DNA from: Octopus sinensis
Taxonomy: Eukaryota
DNA length: 64,000 bases
Assembly (NCBI RefSeq): GCF_006345805.1
Contig: NC_043000.1
Span: 104,842,001-104,906,000 of the forward strand
Direction of reading: 5' to 3'
Below the pieces are notes generated by a model. The model was not told where the DNA came from. It saw nothing but the letters and a program-made list of their open reading frames with translations, and searched no databases. This document shows, one piece after another, positions 11,299 through 42,234 of the stretch (position 1 is the stretch's first letter; the number at the start of each line of letters is the position of its first letter). Position numbers and translations under genes: made by a program.

Positions 11299-11535
11299 CA
11301 ACACACAAATCTCTGCAAGGAAACACAGGAATTCGACCTGTGCATTTCGGAAAGATGAGGCCGCAATAGAAACCCAACAGTTGTTTGGAACATCTTCGAT
11401 CCAGTAAAGGTTCAACTACGGTTCGAAAGCGTTGCCGAGCAGCAGTCTGGTTATCGTCACCAAACAGATTTGGGAAAAATGTCTGAGAATAACCTAAAGA
11501 TATACAGGGATGAAACACCAACGGTTGGCAGCGAG
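11299..11535 (-). CDS. Exon encoding the N-terminal part (7 of 10 Cys) of a Frizzled-type cysteine-rich domain
   Basis: RCQPLVFHPCISLGYSQTFFPNLFGDDNQ...RCSKQLLGFYCGLIFPKC...PCRDLCV matches the FZ/CRD motif (CxP, GYxxTxFPN, CxxxLxxFxC, PC, PCxxLC). Acceptor ctctatttacag, donor G|GTAGGT, 237 bp, phase 1-1. Confidence 0.9.
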
Positions 11536-12379
11536 CTGTAAATAGAGAAATGAGAAAAAGAGCATTAACATATAAATTAATGGTTTCTAATTTAGACAAA
11601 AGGTTGGCAATATTGAAGTCGATACTGTCTATCCCAGTACTTCACTGCTACTTATCGACCCTGGTGGGATGATTGGCAATGTTTACCTCGGCAGAATTTG
11701 ACTTCAGAACATAAAGCTCTCCGCTTTTACTTGTAAATTTATGGCTAAGACTTAAGGGGTTATTCTTGTCGAAAACATCGAACTGATGCGAACATGCTTT
11801 TATGACGGGCACTAGTAATGTAAACTATCCTGCTACTGACGACCGGATTACTGCCAACCTATTCTCTAGGAACAGTTCAACAGTGTGTCTCTTAGATTAA
11901 ATATATAAATGAATGTGAATTAATAGATAAAGAATTCGATTTTCTTCTAGCCCATCCTCCAGGCCCGACTCTTCGACATTACTTGTTTTTCAGTTTTATA
12001 TATTTAACACTAAATAACAGCAATTAATGTAAAAAAAGTTTAACAAAAAAAAAAAAACGAAAACTTTCAAAACTTTTCTTTTTGATTATTAAAATGAACT
12101 GTTATGATTTACCATTTGCTCCATAATATATCCGGTACTAGTAAAAACTCTGTTACTCTAAACATGGCCTTATTTCGTTTAATGGTTAATTCATCTCTGC
12201 TGCTAGTATCAAAGTATAATCTTTCTTCCTGATGGCCGTCTAGTAGTTATTATAAACTGGGACAAATAAGCAGAGAGGAGCATATTTCACTCAAAATGTA
12301 CAACAGAAACTTAGGTTTAGGTGAATCTGGTCTTCTTGTATTAAATTATGATTAGTTAAATAAAACAATAAGTAGCAAG

Positions 12380-13240
12380 TAATATCTAAAAAGGCTTTTC
12401 AGTCCGTCTCATGACGAGAATTGAAACGGCATTGCCCCGGAAGCTGGCGAGAGAGATGCGCTGGGACAAGCACTGTGACTCACGGGGCTCGCACGAGCGA
12501 ATAGCTATATCCGCCCCTATATCGGTGAGCAGGGATGTGGTCAAAGGGCCGAGAACGTTAGAGGTGTCCCCTGCAACAAGTTCGACCACAAATCTGTCAG
12601 AGAACCGCCGATACTTTGACAGTTTACCCATCTCGACTTGATGAGCAACTGAATACACCAGATTGCCGTTGGAAAAGGTATCTCAGCATGTGATATTCCA
12701 GATGTGAGGCCTACCACCGCGGAACGGGAAAAGTATCATGCCGTCTGGGATTTTTACCGTCCCCTTGGACTAGCTTCTCTGGTTCGAGCTGCGAAGGGAA
12801 GCCTACGGCGTTTTGGCCATATTTTATGACCTCATTAAAAGCAGTACGGCGTGGAAAGCTACCAGCACTATAATGGTATGACAATGGGTGGAGACCGACA
12901 GAATTCACATTAGTTCCGTAGCGGCACTTGAGAGGCTCAGATCTGGAGACCAAGTTTCGGGGAATCACTGATGCATAGACAGTCGCAACTAAGCAGAATG
13001 CCAGTCGAGAGTGATGGACTGCGTTGAGCCAGGCTTCGCTGTGAGGCTGGGAGCCGAGGGGAAACATGCCAGACGGTGCTGGTCAAGCCAGCGCACCAGC
13101 CGGTCCGATTCATACTGCACTGGATGGCGTCCCTTTTGCTTTGGGGTGACGGACATTCACAAAGCGGAGAGAGATGGACGTCGCAGGGAGGAGGCCGGGG
13201 AGGAAAAAGAACTGTATTAATAGACCTATCGCGAGGCGAG
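12380..13240 (-). mobile_element. 3' fragment of a CRE-like non-LTR retrotransposon (decayed zinc knuckle plus restriction-like endonuclease)
   Basis: GC-rich island. Across frameshifts it reads ...GLHPLSYHYSAG..RRTAFNEVIK...GFPSQLEP...GDGKNPDGM.LFP...GKLSKY...SQRISLASFRGNAVSIL. Confidence 0.85.
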
Positions 13241-14114
13241 AGAATGAAGAAGGCGTTCTGTTGTGTAACCATGCCATCAGTTGTTGCTCTGAATATTTTG
13301 TCTCAAATTGTTCTTATGTTTAATAAAATTTAATCTATAATTTTAGCAGGTAATCGTTCATATTTGTGTGTTTAATCCTCATCGAAAACATCGAACCGAG
13401 GTAGGATACCTTACTATACTTGACATAACTGAATTACCCATCTTGCTAGCGCTAAGTTGTTGACAAATTATCCTATGAAATAAATGAAATATTTATGAAG
13501 ATAAATTTGTATAGTTAAAAATACAGATAATTTAAAAAGAATAGAATTCATAATACACAATTTGAAGAAAGGAAATATCAATCGCTCAACAAAGTATAGC
13601 ATACTTCCTGATTAGACATAAATATGGATAATTCTTGTCTTGTCAGTGGACCTACTCCATATTTTTGATTTCAAATTATGTTTATGATATGTAAAGACCA
13701 TTTATATCGCTGCTGCAATTTAATAGCAGTATTAGTGGCAGACATGAATCCCAACAAGCTGATTTACCTTGGTTATATGATAAAAGAATATTTTCATGCT
13801 TGGAATGTTAAAAAGTTGAATAATGAATTATGCCAGAGAATAAAACGTTTTCTTTTTTCATTCTAAAATACTAGAGATGACACCGAACGTGTTTCATCTG
13901 TTTCGAAATTCCTCAGTAGAAGTTCAGACACGCCGTTAAAAGTCTAAGTATTAAGGAACGAATAACTAGGTAAATATACTGAGTAGATATTCTGAATAGA
14001 GATGTAATGTAAAGTGAAGATAACATTTGGTATGTTTTTGTGCTGGCAAACTTTTGATGTGTTACACTGTTATGAAACTTCAATGTTATAATATTATGTT
14101 CAGAAAGCTTTTAC

Positions 14115-14255
14115 CTGTAATGGGTGCCGTCTCCTCAATACTTCCGGTAGATATGCTGACTTCCGTAGTGTCCAGTATAATTTTCAGCATGGTTATGTAG
14201 AAGTGAATCCGAACTGCAAAGAGTTCTTTGTTCACCAAAGGCATGAATGAACCTC
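14115..14255 (-). CDS. Probable linker exon (GSFMPLVNKELFAVRIHFYITMLKIILDTTEVSISTGSIEETAPIT)
   Basis: Pyrimidine tract ending tttaag, donor ACAG|GTAAAA, 141 bp, open in phase 1-1 and compatible with the neighbouring exons. No domain recognised. Confidence 0.5.
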
Positions 14256-39752: not shown

Positions 39753-41073
39753 TATATCATATCCTTCCCCATGCCATAGTCGATGAGACATGTGAAAGCA
39801 TATGGACACTGCCACTTTCTTCAGATTAGAAATATAAAAAGTGTAATTATTACCATAGTTATCAGTCCAAATTTTGGCATAAGGCCAACAATTTCGGGGG
39901 AGAGGGAAGTCGATTATATCGACTCCAGTGCTCAATTGGCACTTATTTTATCCACCTCGTAAGAAGGAAAAGCAAGAATGAAAGAATGAATCTGAACTTA
40001 GAACATAAAGACGGACGAAATTGCGCTAAGCATTTTGCCCAGCGTGCTAATGATTCTGCCAGCCCACCGCCTTAATTATTACCATAATTATCAAACGCTG
40101 TCAGTATCATTGTTGTTATGAAGGGTAAACAAGAGTAGGAACAAAAAACCGGCTAAGTGAGAAAGTTACTAAATTTCTACTTCCGGTGTTATGTTTGTAT
40201 CGAACTGTTGGTTCAGTATTTCACTTTATTATGATCATGTTTAATCTAGTAAAAAGCAATGCCCAGTTATGAACGCAATGCTCAGTGAACTTGCTGAATC
40301 AAAGACTCGTCAGAATGACTGCATATTTGTTGCTTGGTCTATTGCTTAGTAGCAACACTTTTTTCTGGAGCACACTGAACCAGAAAAAATCTCCACTCAA
40401 TCTGACTGTTCAATTTGTTTAACATTAGATCTCAGTTGTAGATTATTGTTTGAATGACAGGTAAAAAAATTTTAAAGAGGCGTAATGCCAAGAAGGGTTC
40501 AACAAAGTGTTTAGTTTAGTATATGGTCTGAAAATATGACTGATACACAACGCGAACGTTGGGAAGAGAAACTGAGTGATGGGTTATTTCGATATTTCAA
40601 CAAGTTATTTGTAGATTTTGGGCATAAACGATGTTAATTTTCCAAATGAATATCATGTAGGATTTTATACCCATTAAAGGTCAGTGTGTATAAAACACCT
40701 ATAAACTATAATTACATAAATATACTATATATCTGTGAATATTACAATACTTACCTATGGTGTATTAACCAAAATTCTGACTCCGTAAATAACACTTTTT
40801 TTCATCTTTGTTAATAGATATTGGGGTTTGTTTGAGTGTAGCGGTGAGAACTGAAACTCATATAACAGAGTTGTTAATCATCACTTCAAAAACTCATCCC
40901 ACTGTAGGGAAAATCTAGAGCAAATTAACGGTCGCTAAGATTTTGAATTGTCAATCCTTCGACAGAGAGCTCAGAATGGCTTCAATGGGTTTGCTTCAGT
41001 TCTTACATAAAAAACTAAAATGGTATGCGTGTACGTCTGTATTTGTATGTATATTTATATAGAGACAAACGGA

Positions 41074-41259
41074 AGTGGTTCTCAACTCATTTGGTAGAAG
41101 TTACAGATATTATTTAAAAACTGTTTGATTCGGCTCCATGCAACTCGAATTTTCGTGGGCTTGTAAAACGAACCTAGTTCGGTTGCTTCTGCCTGGGGAC
41201 CTAAGTTCGTTTTACAAGACTTCAAAACTTCAAGTTACATGGAGCCGAACCAAACTGTT
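41074..41259. mobile_element. hAT-like end plus a ~60-bp-arm imperfect hairpin (41119-41259)
   Basis: agtggttctcaac at ~41074; arms aactgtttgattcggctccatg...cgaacctag and ctaagttcg...catggagccgaaccaaactgtt. Confidence 0.55.
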
Positions 41260-41577
41260 AATAGAATTATGTATGTATGTATGTATGTATGTATGTATGT
41301 AGTATGTATGTATGTATATATATATATATATATATGTGTGTGTGTGTGTGTGGTGTGTGTGTGTGTGTGTGTGTGTGTGTGTGTGCGTGTGTGTGTGTGA
41401 GTATGCATTTTCACGTGAAAATACTAACCTACTAACCTGTGGGAATATATGTGGATGGTATGCACACACAGAAATTTGAATGCAAGTGCACAACCACGAA
41501 TATTGATGCACATGTAATTGCGTGTGTGAGTGCGCGCGCACGTGCGCGTACATATGCATATTGAAGAAATTACATAC

Positions 41578-41650
41578 CTGGGGGTAGACCATGGCAACTG
41601 TTGGAGAACACCATCATTAAGAGAAACAGCTTCCATCCCAGTGACGTCAT
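41578..41650 (-). CDS. First coding exon: signal peptide MTSLGWKLFLLMMVFSNSCHG-LPP of a secreted Kunitz/Frizzled-domain protein (whole exon 41578-41676)
   Basis: Strong acceptor (tatttctatattttttccag) before 41676 and donor CCAG|GTATGT after 41578. 73 coding nt = 24 codons + 1 (phase 1). The peptide has a basic residue, a hydrophobic core and a small-residue cleavage motif. The phase matches the Kunitz exons. Confidence 0.8.
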
Positions 41651-42234
41651 TTCCTGTTGCTGACCATTACATCACACTGGAAAAAATATAGAAATAGCTA
41701 CAGGTTTAGTTAAGGAGTATTTACCATCTCCATTTTACTATTGTATGATTAGACTTTACAATGGTTGTACTAATACATACTGTTCACTATTTTCTATACC
41801 ATTTCGTATTCTTTCTTCCTTTTTCTTCCTCTCTCATAATTTTCCTATCTTTTTTGTGTTTATTCTTCTTGCTCTAAGTTTCATTCTTCTCATACTCTCT
41901 ATGATATCATTTTAATTATTCTCTCTTCTCTTACTGTGTGTGTGTCCTTTATTTAAATTCCCTAGTTTAAGGAAGAGGAGCAGCATTTTTTTCTTTTTCG
42001 GTTAACTTAGAATTGTGTGACATTGATGCGATTAATGTAAATATTGAAATCTTGTAGAAATTTAAACGAAACCACAGATTTTAAAGACAGAAAGTTGTGA
42101 GGAGGAAGAATCACGGAAAAGAAAAACAAGAATACATGGGTTACCGTAATGATTAATTGCAAAAGTAATTTCTCATCAAAAGAATAGAAGAGAAGGCAAT
42201 TACCTTGAGTGGGAAAGAGGAAGAAAATATTCAC

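Follow-up and report, generated by a model that had tools for sequence, protein, structure and literature searches.

Does the minus strand of this stretch of Octopus sinensis DNA encode one secreted protein in which two Kunitz-like modules precede a Frizzled (FZ) cysteine-rich domain (CRD), and how might such a protein act? The window, that is, the entire 64,000 nucleotides analysed, almost certainly contains a genuine protein-coding gene with this architecture. Our best overall explanation, which adds secretion, action as a soluble-CRD modulator, optional Kunitz modules, and an origin by exon shuffling, is tentative, and we place it slightly short of an even chance. The pairing of Kunitz-like modules with an FZ domain has been kept from octopus to cuttlefish. 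In databases it is labelled only "uncharacterized protein" or, automatically, "Protein MIG-1 a", and the literature searched does not contain this architecture, in agreement with an earlier sequence-only reading that recognized no named family.

The gene spans approximately 41 kb, from position 41650 down to 744, and is divided into seven GT-AG exons with phase 1 at every internal junction (Table 1). The five exons listed by the sequence-only reading were correctly placed, with AG acceptors at exons 2–5 and GT donors at all five, and splicing them yields, in frame through phase-1 junctions, the peptide that it quoted. Exon 1 stands as listed and is refined by placing the ATG at 41650, after a short 5'UTR and a probable acceptor at 41677/41676. 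This acceptor is based on the likeness to the Sepia 5'UTR, which begins directly after a "ccag". The same reading ended the open reading frame (ORF) at ...LCV (11299), which is wrong, since a GT donor follows directly; two further exons complete the ORF and the ten-cysteine FZ domain, and the gene continues approximately 10.5 kb beyond the proposed lower bound. The predicted exon 7 contributes a coding stub of 5 nt, which provides the last Ala and the stop codon (junction AG/CT TGA). Its acceptor is the sole AG/CN-stop site with a polypyrimidine tract within positions 1–3394. With exon 7 added, the spliced coding sequence of 936 nt encodes 311 residues and matches RefSeq XP_036358183.1 ("uncharacterized protein LOC118763056", Octopus sinensis) exactly. 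An AATAAA motif is located at 620–615 in the 3'UTR of exon 7, and the stop codon and the poly(A) signal are both inside the window. The acceptor of exon 4 is weak (TTTAAG), and its position is the same in a Sepia-type genomic contig (L002).

Table 1. Exons of the gene encoding the Kunitz-like and FZ protein, in window coordinates.
Feature	Position	Strand	Description
Exon 1	41578..41676	-	coding part 41650-41578, ATG 41650; donor GTATGT; ends in phase 1
Exon 1 product		-	MTSLGWKLFLLMMVFSNSCHG/LPP, signal-peptide-like N-terminus
Exon 2	28744..28935	-	192 nt, phase 1-1; Kunitz-like module 1
Exon 3	26987..27178	-	192 nt, phase 1-1; Kunitz-like module 2
Exon 4	14115..14255	-	141 nt, phase 1-1; linker
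Exon 5	11299..11535	-	237 nt, phase 1-1; FZ cysteine-rich domain, Cys 1-7
Exon 6	3397..3492	-	96 nt, phase 1-1; FZ Cys 8-10 (DVWKGCGEEPTLGLCNHLVEDKPHCFRPRPTS)
Exon 7 (terminal, predicted)	600..748	-	3' end approximate; coding stub 748-744

Orthologues are present in O. bimaculoides, O. vulgaris, and Argonauta hians, and in RNA-seq data of the cuttlefish Sepia esculenta. No family member beyond coleoid cephalopods was found in the databases searched, which agrees with the lineage restriction suggested previously. The A. hians gene has the same exons and phases, and five independent S. esculenta RNA-seq assemblies contain an identical 326-residue ORF with the full architecture on one mRNA, which together place the gene structure far beyond chance. 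Three independent annotations (NCBI O. sinensis, NCBI O. bimaculoides, and A. hians) agree on the product. The Sepia transcripts carrying both parts exclude separate Kunitz and FZ genes. Runs SRR25097172 and SRR23936182 are assigned to S. esculenta by a data-availability text (PMC10571815), and, with SRR19578113, three of the five runs are listed in S. esculenta papers. The three traced runs belong to RNA-seq studies of larvae or juveniles, which constitute the sole expression evidence. One assembled Sepia contig (L001), the single source of a short isoform and derived from one run, is equal to another (L003) minus exactly 384 nt (2 x 192), so that both Kunitz-like exons are skipped. The module exons of Sepia can thus be omitted together, which leaves the signal peptide, linker, and CRD.

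The N-terminus of the octopus protein has a hydrophobic leader with Lys7, a hydrophobic core, and small residues at positions -3 and -1, and we infer that it is a signal peptide. A search for transmembrane segments identified none, the highest internal hydropathy being 1.32, below the usual cut-off of 1.6. The polypeptide ends eight residues beyond the tenth FZ cysteine (C10) and is probably secreted. The sequence-only reading is supported in assigning to one secreted-type protein a signal peptide, a tandem pair of divergent Kunitz-like modules, and an FZ CRD. In the linker, the hydrophobic core (GSFMPLVNKELFAVRIHFYITMLKIILDTTEVS) is conserved and the tail varies; the short Sepia isoform also contains this linker.

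Each of the two modules comprises 63 residues with six cysteines, encoded by a single exon. The cysteine spacing is 10-19-7-17-3 in both, and module 2 is 41% identical to module 1 in an ungapped alignment; exon 3 is evidently a tandem exon duplicate. The symmetric phases of the module exons fit the exon shuffling proposed earlier, combined with tandem duplication. Most likely, a Kunitz exon would have been shuffled next to a Frizzled-type CRD and then duplicated before the divergence of octopus and cuttlefish. The P1 position, the residue after Cys2, is Asp, Glu, or Gln, and the secondary loop lacks its Gly-Gly, the Gly-Gly-Cys being replaced. The modules are therefore probably not classical trypsin-type inhibitors but optional protein-binding units that splicing can switch. 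Their loops contain insertions of two, four, and five residues, the longest of which is predicted to form an extra helix. The putative reactive loop has the pattern I-[FY]-[GA]-D-M-R-C-[DEQ], and its D-M-R-C stretch does not vary among the six modules.

It is possible, but unlikely, that the modules are instead the working end of an unusual or non-canonical secreted protease inhibitor, which the FZ domain and linker would target or anchor to the matrix, cell surface, or substrate, in parallel with corin, in which FZ domains serve substrate recognition. In its favor, conservation within the protein peaks in the modules and in their putative reactive loop; module identity is 73% between Octopus and Sepia and 88–94% between Octopus and Argonauta, compared to 60% and 69%, respectively, for the FZ domain (Fisher p = 0.035 for Sepia and 4e-5 for Argonauta). 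A Kunitz fold is supported, and the tandem inhibitors bikunin and TFPI are among its structural matches. However, the P1 residues, the replaced Gly-Gly-Cys, and the loop insertions do not fit an inhibitor, and the natural isoform that lacks both modules retains the linker and FZ domain, which suggests that the FZ part works alone. We favor an extracellular soluble CRD that would act as a ligand-binding decoy or modulator, most likely for Wnt proteins or else for a different ligand that is hydrophobic or carries a lipid. The decoy mechanism, taken by itself, is plausible, with a chance clearly below even.

The FZ domain scores 58.1 bits against the Pfam Fz profile (cut-off 32.1), and all ten of its cysteines are present once exon 6 is included. 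The closest solved CRDs are those of Frizzled-4 (E about 1e-14), followed by sFRP3 (2e-9) and Sizzled (4e-7 to 5e-7); the CRD of ROR2 is a marginal match (E 0.4). The C1–C8 spacing equals that of FZD8, whereas the C8–C10 stretch is shortened to 19 residues from the 30 in FZD8, so that about 11 are missing. Counterparts of FZD8 M122, Y125, and F127 are absent, and F72 and F86 are replaced. The missing region corresponds to one wall of the Wnt-lipid groove in FZD8, given the residue roles in the XWnt8–Fz8 structure (PDB: 4F0A). Because of this shortening and the missing or replaced groove residues, canonical Wnt-lipid binding by the octopus CRD is doubtful. The incomplete groove, the restriction of the family to coleoids in the databases searched, and the frequent recruitment of Kunitz folds to secretions and venoms would suit a secreted protein that is specific to the lineage and unconnected with Wnt, in which a degenerate CRD binds another ligand, or which is a structural, egg-coat, gland, or toxin-like product. 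We consider such a protein improbable to the same degree as the inhibitor, since C1–C8 is strongly similar to Frizzled receptors and the sequence has been under purifying conservation across the octopus–cuttlefish split, unlike fast-evolving venom genes. Furthermore, nothing points to a toxin or to the gland secretion suggested previously: the larval and juvenile Sepia data originate from several unrelated experiments, not gland libraries.

The Kunitz label itself stands by profile and fold methods, which are needed because neither module reaches the Pfam gathering threshold; Kunitz_BPTI, at 14–15 bits in both the octopus and the cuttlefish protein, is the only family match besides Fz. A search of the PDB with a single module sequence detected no Kunitz domain, and no canonical Kunitz protein was recovered when 1.84 billion representatives were searched exhaustively with a profile. 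These results, together with the moderate confidence of the AlphaFold module model (pLDDT 62), would be expected if the modules had an unrelated or convergent disulfide-rich fold that resembles Kunitz domains through its cysteine-rich composition. That is quite improbable, as a six-module profile matched solely the Kunitz domain of collagen VI alpha-3 among 177,635 distinct PDB sequences. The hhalign comparison with collagen VI Kunitz orthologues gave 88–91% probability (P about 1e-6), and none of 200 composition-preserving column shuffles reached its score (maximum 23.8 versus 34.4). The N-terminal third of the module, the C1–C2 loop, is left unaligned and also has low confidence in the AlphaFold model. 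This model was built from the six module sequences alone, without templates or Kunitz sequences, and its best 50 Foldseek matches in the PDB are all Kunitz domains (query-normalised TM-scores 0.44–0.58), including those of bikunin, TFPI, and WFIKKN and many toxin entries, which are structural neighbours only. The full-length model, with a pLDDT of 35, is too poor to be used. Further agreement with Kunitz domains, which are typically encoded by a single phase 1-1 exon, comes from the W/Y-Y-D...C...F-x-T-C motif and from two cysteine spacings, C3-x7-C4 and C5-x3-C6. A very divergent Kunitz fold is thus supported by the profiles and the predicted model. The fusion of a Kunitz-like gene with a neighbouring FZ gene during prediction, for which the long introns (12.6 and 12.7 kb) and the weak exon 4 acceptor could speak, is extremely improbable given the complete ORF on single molecules in five Sepia contigs, the concordant annotations, and the lack of a stop or alternative start separating the parts.

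The protein shares a signal peptide, a single ten-cysteine FZ CRD, the absence of a membrane anchor, and the presumed mode of action as a soluble decoy or modulator with sFRP1–5, Sizzled, and Crescent. It differs from sFRPs in lacking the C-terminal netrin-like (NTR) domain, since it ends shortly after C10, in having at the N-terminus a pair of Kunitz-like modules together with a conserved linker, and in a CRD that resembles Frizzled receptors (FZD4, 1e-14) more than sFRPs and is shortened between C8 and C10. Frizzled CRDs, especially that of Frizzled-4, are the best FZ sequence match with an identical C1–C8 spacing pattern, and the short Sepia isoform is similar to soluble CRD-only Frizzled splice forms; unlike the receptors, the octopus protein has neither the seven-pass transmembrane region nor a counterpart of the FZD8 M122–F127 segment. 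Tandem Kunitz-fold modules, symmetric phase-1 exons, and a secreted mosaic organization are shared with bikunin, TFPI, WFIKKN, and collagen VI alpha-3, whose C5 domain matches the octopus modules best in both sequence and profile comparisons. The cysteine spacing of tandem Kunitz/BPTI proteins is 8-15-7-12-3, and the octopus modules are distinguished from them by the absence of G-G-C-x-G-N, an acidic or amide P1, the five-residue insertion, and the sub-threshold Pfam score. No other Kunitz protein is known to have an FZ domain, and none was found in the literature searched. In APP, the KPI cassette exon is included or skipped by alternative splicing, similarly to the module exons described here. 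The Kunitz module of APP was gained by exon insertion (PMC3927609); its host protein is unrelated, and here two modules are skipped together, as seen in one RNA-seq contig. Corin, collagen XVIII, carboxypeptidase Z, MFRP, and ROR/MuSK have partners (protease, LDLa, CUB, kringle, Ig, kinase, or collagen) that a Pfam search did not detect in the octopus protein, which nevertheless resembles them in combining an FZ CRD with unrelated extracellular modules, presumably through exon shuffling.

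LOC118763056 lies on the minus strand, and its seven exons, joined into a CDS of 936 nt, encode a protein of 311 residues that comprises a leader, two Kunitz-like modules, a linker, and a Frizzled-type (FZ) cysteine-rich domain (CRD). A sequence-only reading had proposed five of these exons, and all five were recovered on the minus strand at the same positions, with AG acceptors on exons 2-5 and GT donors on all five. Splicing them through phase-1 junctions reproduces in frame the peptide that had been quoted. The proposed end of this peptide at ...DLCV does not hold, because a GT donor directly follows exon 5 and the reading frame runs on. 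The proposed gene extent, 11299-41676, is thus right for the listed exons and wrong at its lower bound, beyond which the gene reaches ~10.5 kb further. Exon 6 was found by tblastn of the public protein onto the window and encodes DVWKGCGEEPTLGLCNHLVEDKPHCFRPRPTS, which holds FZ cysteines 8-10. Positions 1-3394 contain a single site of the form polypyrimidine-AG/CN-stop, at 748 (…ttcttattcttcag/CT TGA), which supplies the last alanine and the stop codon (746-744). An AATAAA is located at 620-615, ~125 nt downstream of this acceptor site. The introns are GT-AG throughout, with lengths of 12.6, 1.6, 12.7, 2.6, 7.8, and 2.6 kb in order. No further Kunitz-like or FZ-like exons were detected in the window by tblastn at E < 1, and a search with the Sepia 5'UTR gave no match to an upstream non-coding 5' exon. 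The leader MTSLGWKLFLLMMVFSNSCHG/LPPE looks, as judged by eye, like a signal peptide, and the 311-residue protein has no membrane span: hydropathy over 19-residue windows peaks at 1.32. The protein is predicted to be secreted.

Coordinates of the LOC118763056 exons and of the other features of the window
Feature	Positions	Strand	Description
Exon 1	41650-41578 (CDS)	minus	putative signal peptide
Exon 2	28935-28744	minus	Kunitz-like module 1
Exon 3	27178-26987	minus	Kunitz-like module 2
Exon 4	14255-14115	minus	linker
Exon 5	11535-11299	minus	FZ Cys 1-7
Exon 6	3492-3397	minus	FZ Cys 8-10
Exon 7	748-744 (CDS)	minus	last Ala and stop
mariner/Tc1-type DNA transposon remnant	44305-45051, other frames to ~45330	plus	~2.6 kb upstream of exon 1
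Non-LTR retrotransposon copy, decayed	22760-23635	plus	in intron 3
Non-LTR retrotransposon copy, decayed	46819-47576	minus	upstream of the gene
~320-bp repeat, main copies	~14781-15100, 37044-37388, 39341-39659, 43142-43492, 52688-52978, 59443-59775		dispersed repeat
~320-bp repeat, shorter copies	1150, 25333, 26451, 48887, 54939		dispersed repeat
Very long microsatellites	1-140, 8400-8900, 25330-25815, 32650-34050		TA/CA/TATG-type; introns and window start
Pro/His/Thr-rich open frame	60826-61536	minus	237 aa
Gly-rich open frame	60988-61446	plus	opposite strand of the preceding frame

Elsewhere in the 64 kb, no protein-coding gene is convincing. Transposon remnants, long microsatellites, and a dispersed ~320-bp repeat are found in the introns and in the 22 kb upstream, and the other long open reading frames considered as neighbouring genes are transposon remnants or low-complexity sequence. 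The mariner/Tc1-type remnant has a 249-residue open frame with a Pfam Transposase_1 match (E 1.6e-25) and an HTH domain; it lacks a start codon, and its frame is broken downstream. The two non-LTR copies give RVT_1 matches across several frames (E 2e-8 to 2e-3), and neither is intact. The ~320-bp repeat, which is possibly SINE-like, occurs in at least 11 copies of 70-93% identity in both orientations, several of them in the introns of the gene, and produces recurrent pseudo-ORFs such as 'THQHRLSSNARGTNTDTQTH'. The microsatellite tracts yield many spurious long open frames rich in Y, I, C, and V. The Pro/His/Thr-rich frame, which has the Gly-rich frame opposite to it, gives no Pfam match and is probably a low-complexity repeat, not a gene.

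The joining of Kunitz-like and FZ exons in one gene, for which the sequence-only reading had proposed a transcript check, is borne out in a related species, since the whole architecture is present on single mRNAs of the cuttlefish Sepia esculenta. Five independent RNA-seq contigs (from runs SRR25158136, SRR25097172, SRR29271455, SRR19578113, and SRR23936182) contain an identical 981-nt open reading frame for a protein of 326 residues. Three of the five runs appear in papers on S. esculenta larvae or juveniles (e.g. PMC10571815, under PRJNA947123). One contig from one further run (L001, SRR25158158) is made up of two stretches that match the full-length contig L003 exactly, joined with the loss of precisely 384 nt (2 x 192). 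This transcript leaves out both Kunitz-like exons and codes for a signal peptide-linker-FZ protein of 198 residues, in which the frame is kept because all internal exons are phase 1-1. A genomic contig (L002), from this species or one very close to it, has a polypyrimidine-AG acceptor before the linker exon at the same position.

The FZ domain passes the gathering threshold of Pfam Fz (PF01392): the octopus and the cuttlefish protein both score 58.1 bits, and the cut-off is 32.1. Among all PDB sequences, the nearest are Frizzled-4 CRDs (E ~1e-14), followed by other Frizzled receptors (1e-11 to 1e-8), sFRP3 (2e-9 with the family profile), and Sizzled (~4e-7), with ROR2 as a marginal match. The ten cysteines are in the canonical order, with a spacing of 7-37-8-6-8-3-6-8-9 compared to 7-36-8-6-10-3-6-16-12 in the CRD of Frizzled-8 (FZD8; the comparison sequence is 126/126 identical to PDB 6ahy_A). 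Cysteines C1-C8 align, and the spacing up to C8 is nearly that of FZD8. The tail of the domain is contracted (C8-x8-C9-x9-C10 versus C8-x16-C9-x12-C10 in FZD8), so that the C8-C10 segment is 11 residues shorter, and all the PDB alignments end just past C8. The palmitoleate groove, which we take from the XWnt8-Fz8 complex (PDB 4F0A) to be lined by Q71, F72, P74, and L75 on one side and M122, Y125, and F127 on the other, does not have a complete set of FZD8 counterparts in the octopus CRD. Pro74 and Leu75 are kept, Phe72 is replaced by valine, and the M122-F127 segment, including all three of its lining residues, has no counterpart. Phe86 of FZD8, a site-2 residue, aligns with glycine or glutamate. 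By these comparisons the domain is clearly a Frizzled-type CRD, for which canonical Wnt-lipid binding cannot be assumed.

On the favoured reading, the protein would act outside the cell as a soluble Frizzled-type CRD that binds and modulates a ligand. The analogy with sFRPs and soluble Frizzled CRDs makes Wnts the candidates to consider first, and the Kunitz-fold modules would serve as optional interaction modules under splice control. We regard this mechanism as possible, at somewhat less than an even chance. The protein could instead be a ligand-binding or structural secretion without relation to Wnt, as the incomplete groove might suggest; given the close similarity of the domain to Frizzled CRDs, we consider this rather unlikely.

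Exon 4 begins with ~34 residues that form the linker core (GSFMPLVNKELFAVRIHFYITMLKIILDTTEVS, encoded by its first ~100 nt), and the remainder of the exon is variable in sequence and length. No match to the linker was found in Pfam or the PDB. It was rejected as a transmembrane helix, with a hydropathy of 1.32, and because such a span would leave the disulfide-rich CRD cytoplasmic. The segment VRIHFYITM alternates between hydrophobic and polar residues, like an amphipathic strand. The linker seems to be tied to the CRD, because the short cuttlefish isoform retains it. The core is conserved like the folded domains, is present in the short isoform, and belongs to no known family, and the CRD meanwhile lacks ~11 residues of the C-terminal part of the groove. 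The conservation of the linker and the loss from the groove may be connected, and one idea is that the linker may pack against the contracted groove.

Each Kunitz-like module has 63 residues, counted from the first to the last cysteine context, and is encoded by a single 192-nt phase 1-1 exon. The two modules are 41% identical without gaps and share the cysteine spacing 10-19-7-17-3. The canonical Kunitz spacing, as in the C5 domain of collagen VI, is 8-15-7-12-3; the x7 (C3-C4) and x3 (C5-C6) intervals are exact, and the other loops are enlarged to 10, 19, and 17 residues. Across six modules (a pair from each of Octopus, Argonauta, and Sepia), the residue following Cys2, which is P1 when the cysteines are counted in order, reads D, D, D, D, Q, and E, and the secondary loop reads F-H/Y-T-C, not Y-G-G-C. 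None of the six has the canonical inhibitory loop with a basic or large hydrophobic P1 and a Gly-Gly-Cys secondary loop. Because of the D/Q/E at P1 and the replacement of Y-G-G-C, the modules are, as judged from these residues, not ordinary inhibitor domains. That the protein is a targeted, non-canonical protease inhibitor, as the Kunitz-like fold might suggest, is unlikely with this loop chemistry. All six modules share an unchanged D-M-R-C loop motif, with the paralogous modules only ~40% identical overall, which suggests that the loop has a conserved role in binding or in structure.

The assignment of the modules to the Kunitz fold was evaluated by profiles and models. The Pfam Kunitz_BPTI profile (PF00014) misses its gathering threshold, with 14.1-15.3 bits against a cut-off of 21 and E values of 0.02-0.06, in a match that covers residues 15-52 of the 53 in the profile, for the octopus protein and the cuttlefish protein alike. 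Besides Fz, it is the sole family matching the octopus query at E <= 10; at E <= 1, Glypican and PSF1_C also appear, as weaker, unrelated, sub-threshold matches. When a profile of the six modules was compared with 177,635 distinct PDB sequences, the only matches at E <= 10 were 1knt and 13bf, the Kunitz domain of collagen VI alpha-3, with C3-C6 aligned and one 5-residue insertion. The hhalign comparison with collagen VI Kunitz orthologues gave 88-91% probability (P 1e-6 to 3e-6) for a narrow reference set, collagen VI alpha-3 orthologues representing one Kunitz subfamily. None of 200 column shuffles reached the real score of 34.4 (mean 10.4, maximum 23.8). An AlphaFold2 model computed from only these six sequences, with no templates, is of modest confidence (pLDDT 62) and contains a beta-hairpin (residues 21-38), an extra helix in the insertion (42-50), and a C-terminal helix (56-63). 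The best 50 Foldseek matches of this model in the PDB are all Kunitz domains, with query-normalised TM scores of 0.44-0.58 and probabilities of 0.8-1.0. The C1-C2 region is unaligned in hhalign and of low confidence in the model. In an exhaustive search among 1.84 billion representative proteins, the module profile matched only the family and two bacterial PEP-CTERM repeat proteins, which were judged spurious, as their repeated 'SAWFYDS' mimics 'AWMYDKS'. The only result of a single-sequence PDB search with the two modules, mitoribosomal protein mL53 (E 0.6), is a chance match, and an AlphaFold model of the whole protein, based on an alignment of three sequences, was set aside for its low confidence (pLDDT 35, pTM 0.26). 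The description "divergent Kunitz-like" in the sequence-only reading is thus upheld at the level of fold and, probably, of homology: profile and fold evidence places the modules in the Kunitz superfamily, yet they miss Pfam's criterion. That they are not truly Kunitz, as this miss might imply, is very unlikely.

Identities between Octopus and Sepia are 73% in both module 1 and module 2, 74% in the linker core, 29% in the linker tail, and 60% in the FZ domain; the corresponding values between Octopus and Argonauta are 88%, 94%, 94%, 21%, and 69%. Conservation is higher in the modules than in the FZ domain (Fisher p = 0.035 when Octopus is compared with Sepia, and 4e-5 with Argonauta). This pattern indicates that selection maintains every part of the protein and that the modules are not passengers in decay. 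Both modules are nearer to their orthologues than to each other, which places the duplication before the octopus-cuttlefish split.

The translation is identical at 311/311 residues to XP_036358183.1/XP_036358184.1, "uncharacterized protein LOC118763056 [Octopus sinensis]". The protein is already in RefSeq as uncharacterised, and what is new here is the recognition of its architecture, its age, the splice switch, and the altered CRD. The O. bimaculoides protein XP_052823136.1, which falls into one 90% cluster with it, has 7 residue differences; the FZ domain accounts for 5 of them and the modules for 1. The cluster also includes O. vulgaris CAI9721139.1, whose automatic name "Protein MIG-1 a", after a C. 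elegans Frizzled, is misleading. Its N-terminus is mis-modelled, beginning MNVECNRQ... without the signal-peptide exon, and two extra residues (VT) stand where exons 4 and 5 meet; these oddities are probably annotation error, not biology. In Argonauta hians, Ahia01_000947200 is 80% identical to the octopus protein, and the genome contains exons of the same length (192, 192, 141, and 96 nt, with an FZ exon of 237 nt) and phase. The Argonauta gene, in the segment 6250903-6289959 of BAAFZT010000053.1, is much more compact, at ~19 kb, with an intron 1 of ~0.57 kb versus 12.6 kb in the octopus window, and no other genes are called within 10 kb on either side. An annotation artefact that fuses two neighbouring genes is extremely improbable for a gene with whole-architecture cuttlefish mRNAs and matching Argonauta exons.

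The sole precomputed Pfam domain of every member is Fz: because the modules are below the Pfam threshold, public annotation gives Fz only, and the architecture is absent from the domain annotation that these proteins carry. No mention of the gene or protein accessions was found in the searchable literature, and literature searches for a Kunitz and Frizzled architecture gave nothing relevant. Word-indexed homologue searches with the protein and with a three-species profile matched cephalopod sequences only, so there are no outgroup relatives for placing the family. The protein, which octopuses and cuttlefishes have conserved since their split, appears to be confined to coleoid cephalopods. Coleoids are noted for lineage-specific developmental novelties. 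A bolder version of the soluble-CRD mechanism would be a coleoid invention in which half of the Wnt-lipid groove of a secreted CRD is deleted and the groove is completed or gated by the strongly conserved hydrophobic linker strand, with partner choice switched by splicing of two non-inhibitory Kunitz-fold modules. This is speculative and decidedly unlikely; if true, a Wnt pathway or another lipid-ligand pathway would have an extracellular regulator of a new kind, without counterpart in other animals.

FZ CRDs are the ligand-binding heads of Wnt receptors, and soluble forms such as the sFRPs shape Wnt gradients in development. By analogy, the protein would work most like an sFRP or a soluble CRD. 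It resembles sFRPs in the signal peptide, judged by inspection, and in an FZ CRD without a membrane span; it differs in the NTR domain, the absence of which means that it is not an sFRP (no Pfam NTR match at E <= 10, and the reading frame stops 8 residues past C10). Nor is it a Frizzled receptor, because it has no 7TM region: the 311 residues contain no Frizzled 7TM match and no transmembrane-grade hydropathy. The inclusion or skipping of the APP KPI exon by splicing offers a parallel to the Kunitz cassette, which is likewise included or skipped here. The gain of the Kunitz domain by APP has been described (PMC3927609). The gene neatly illustrates three processes at once, namely the shuffling of phase 1-1 exon modules, tandem exon duplication, and cassette splicing. 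Should the protein bind Wnts, it would provide a new handle on cephalopod Wnt regulation, and if it does not, a Frizzled CRD would have been re-used for another ligand. It would be a soluble FZ protein of a different build from the sFRPs, with two Kunitz-fold modules and a conserved linker and no NTR domain.
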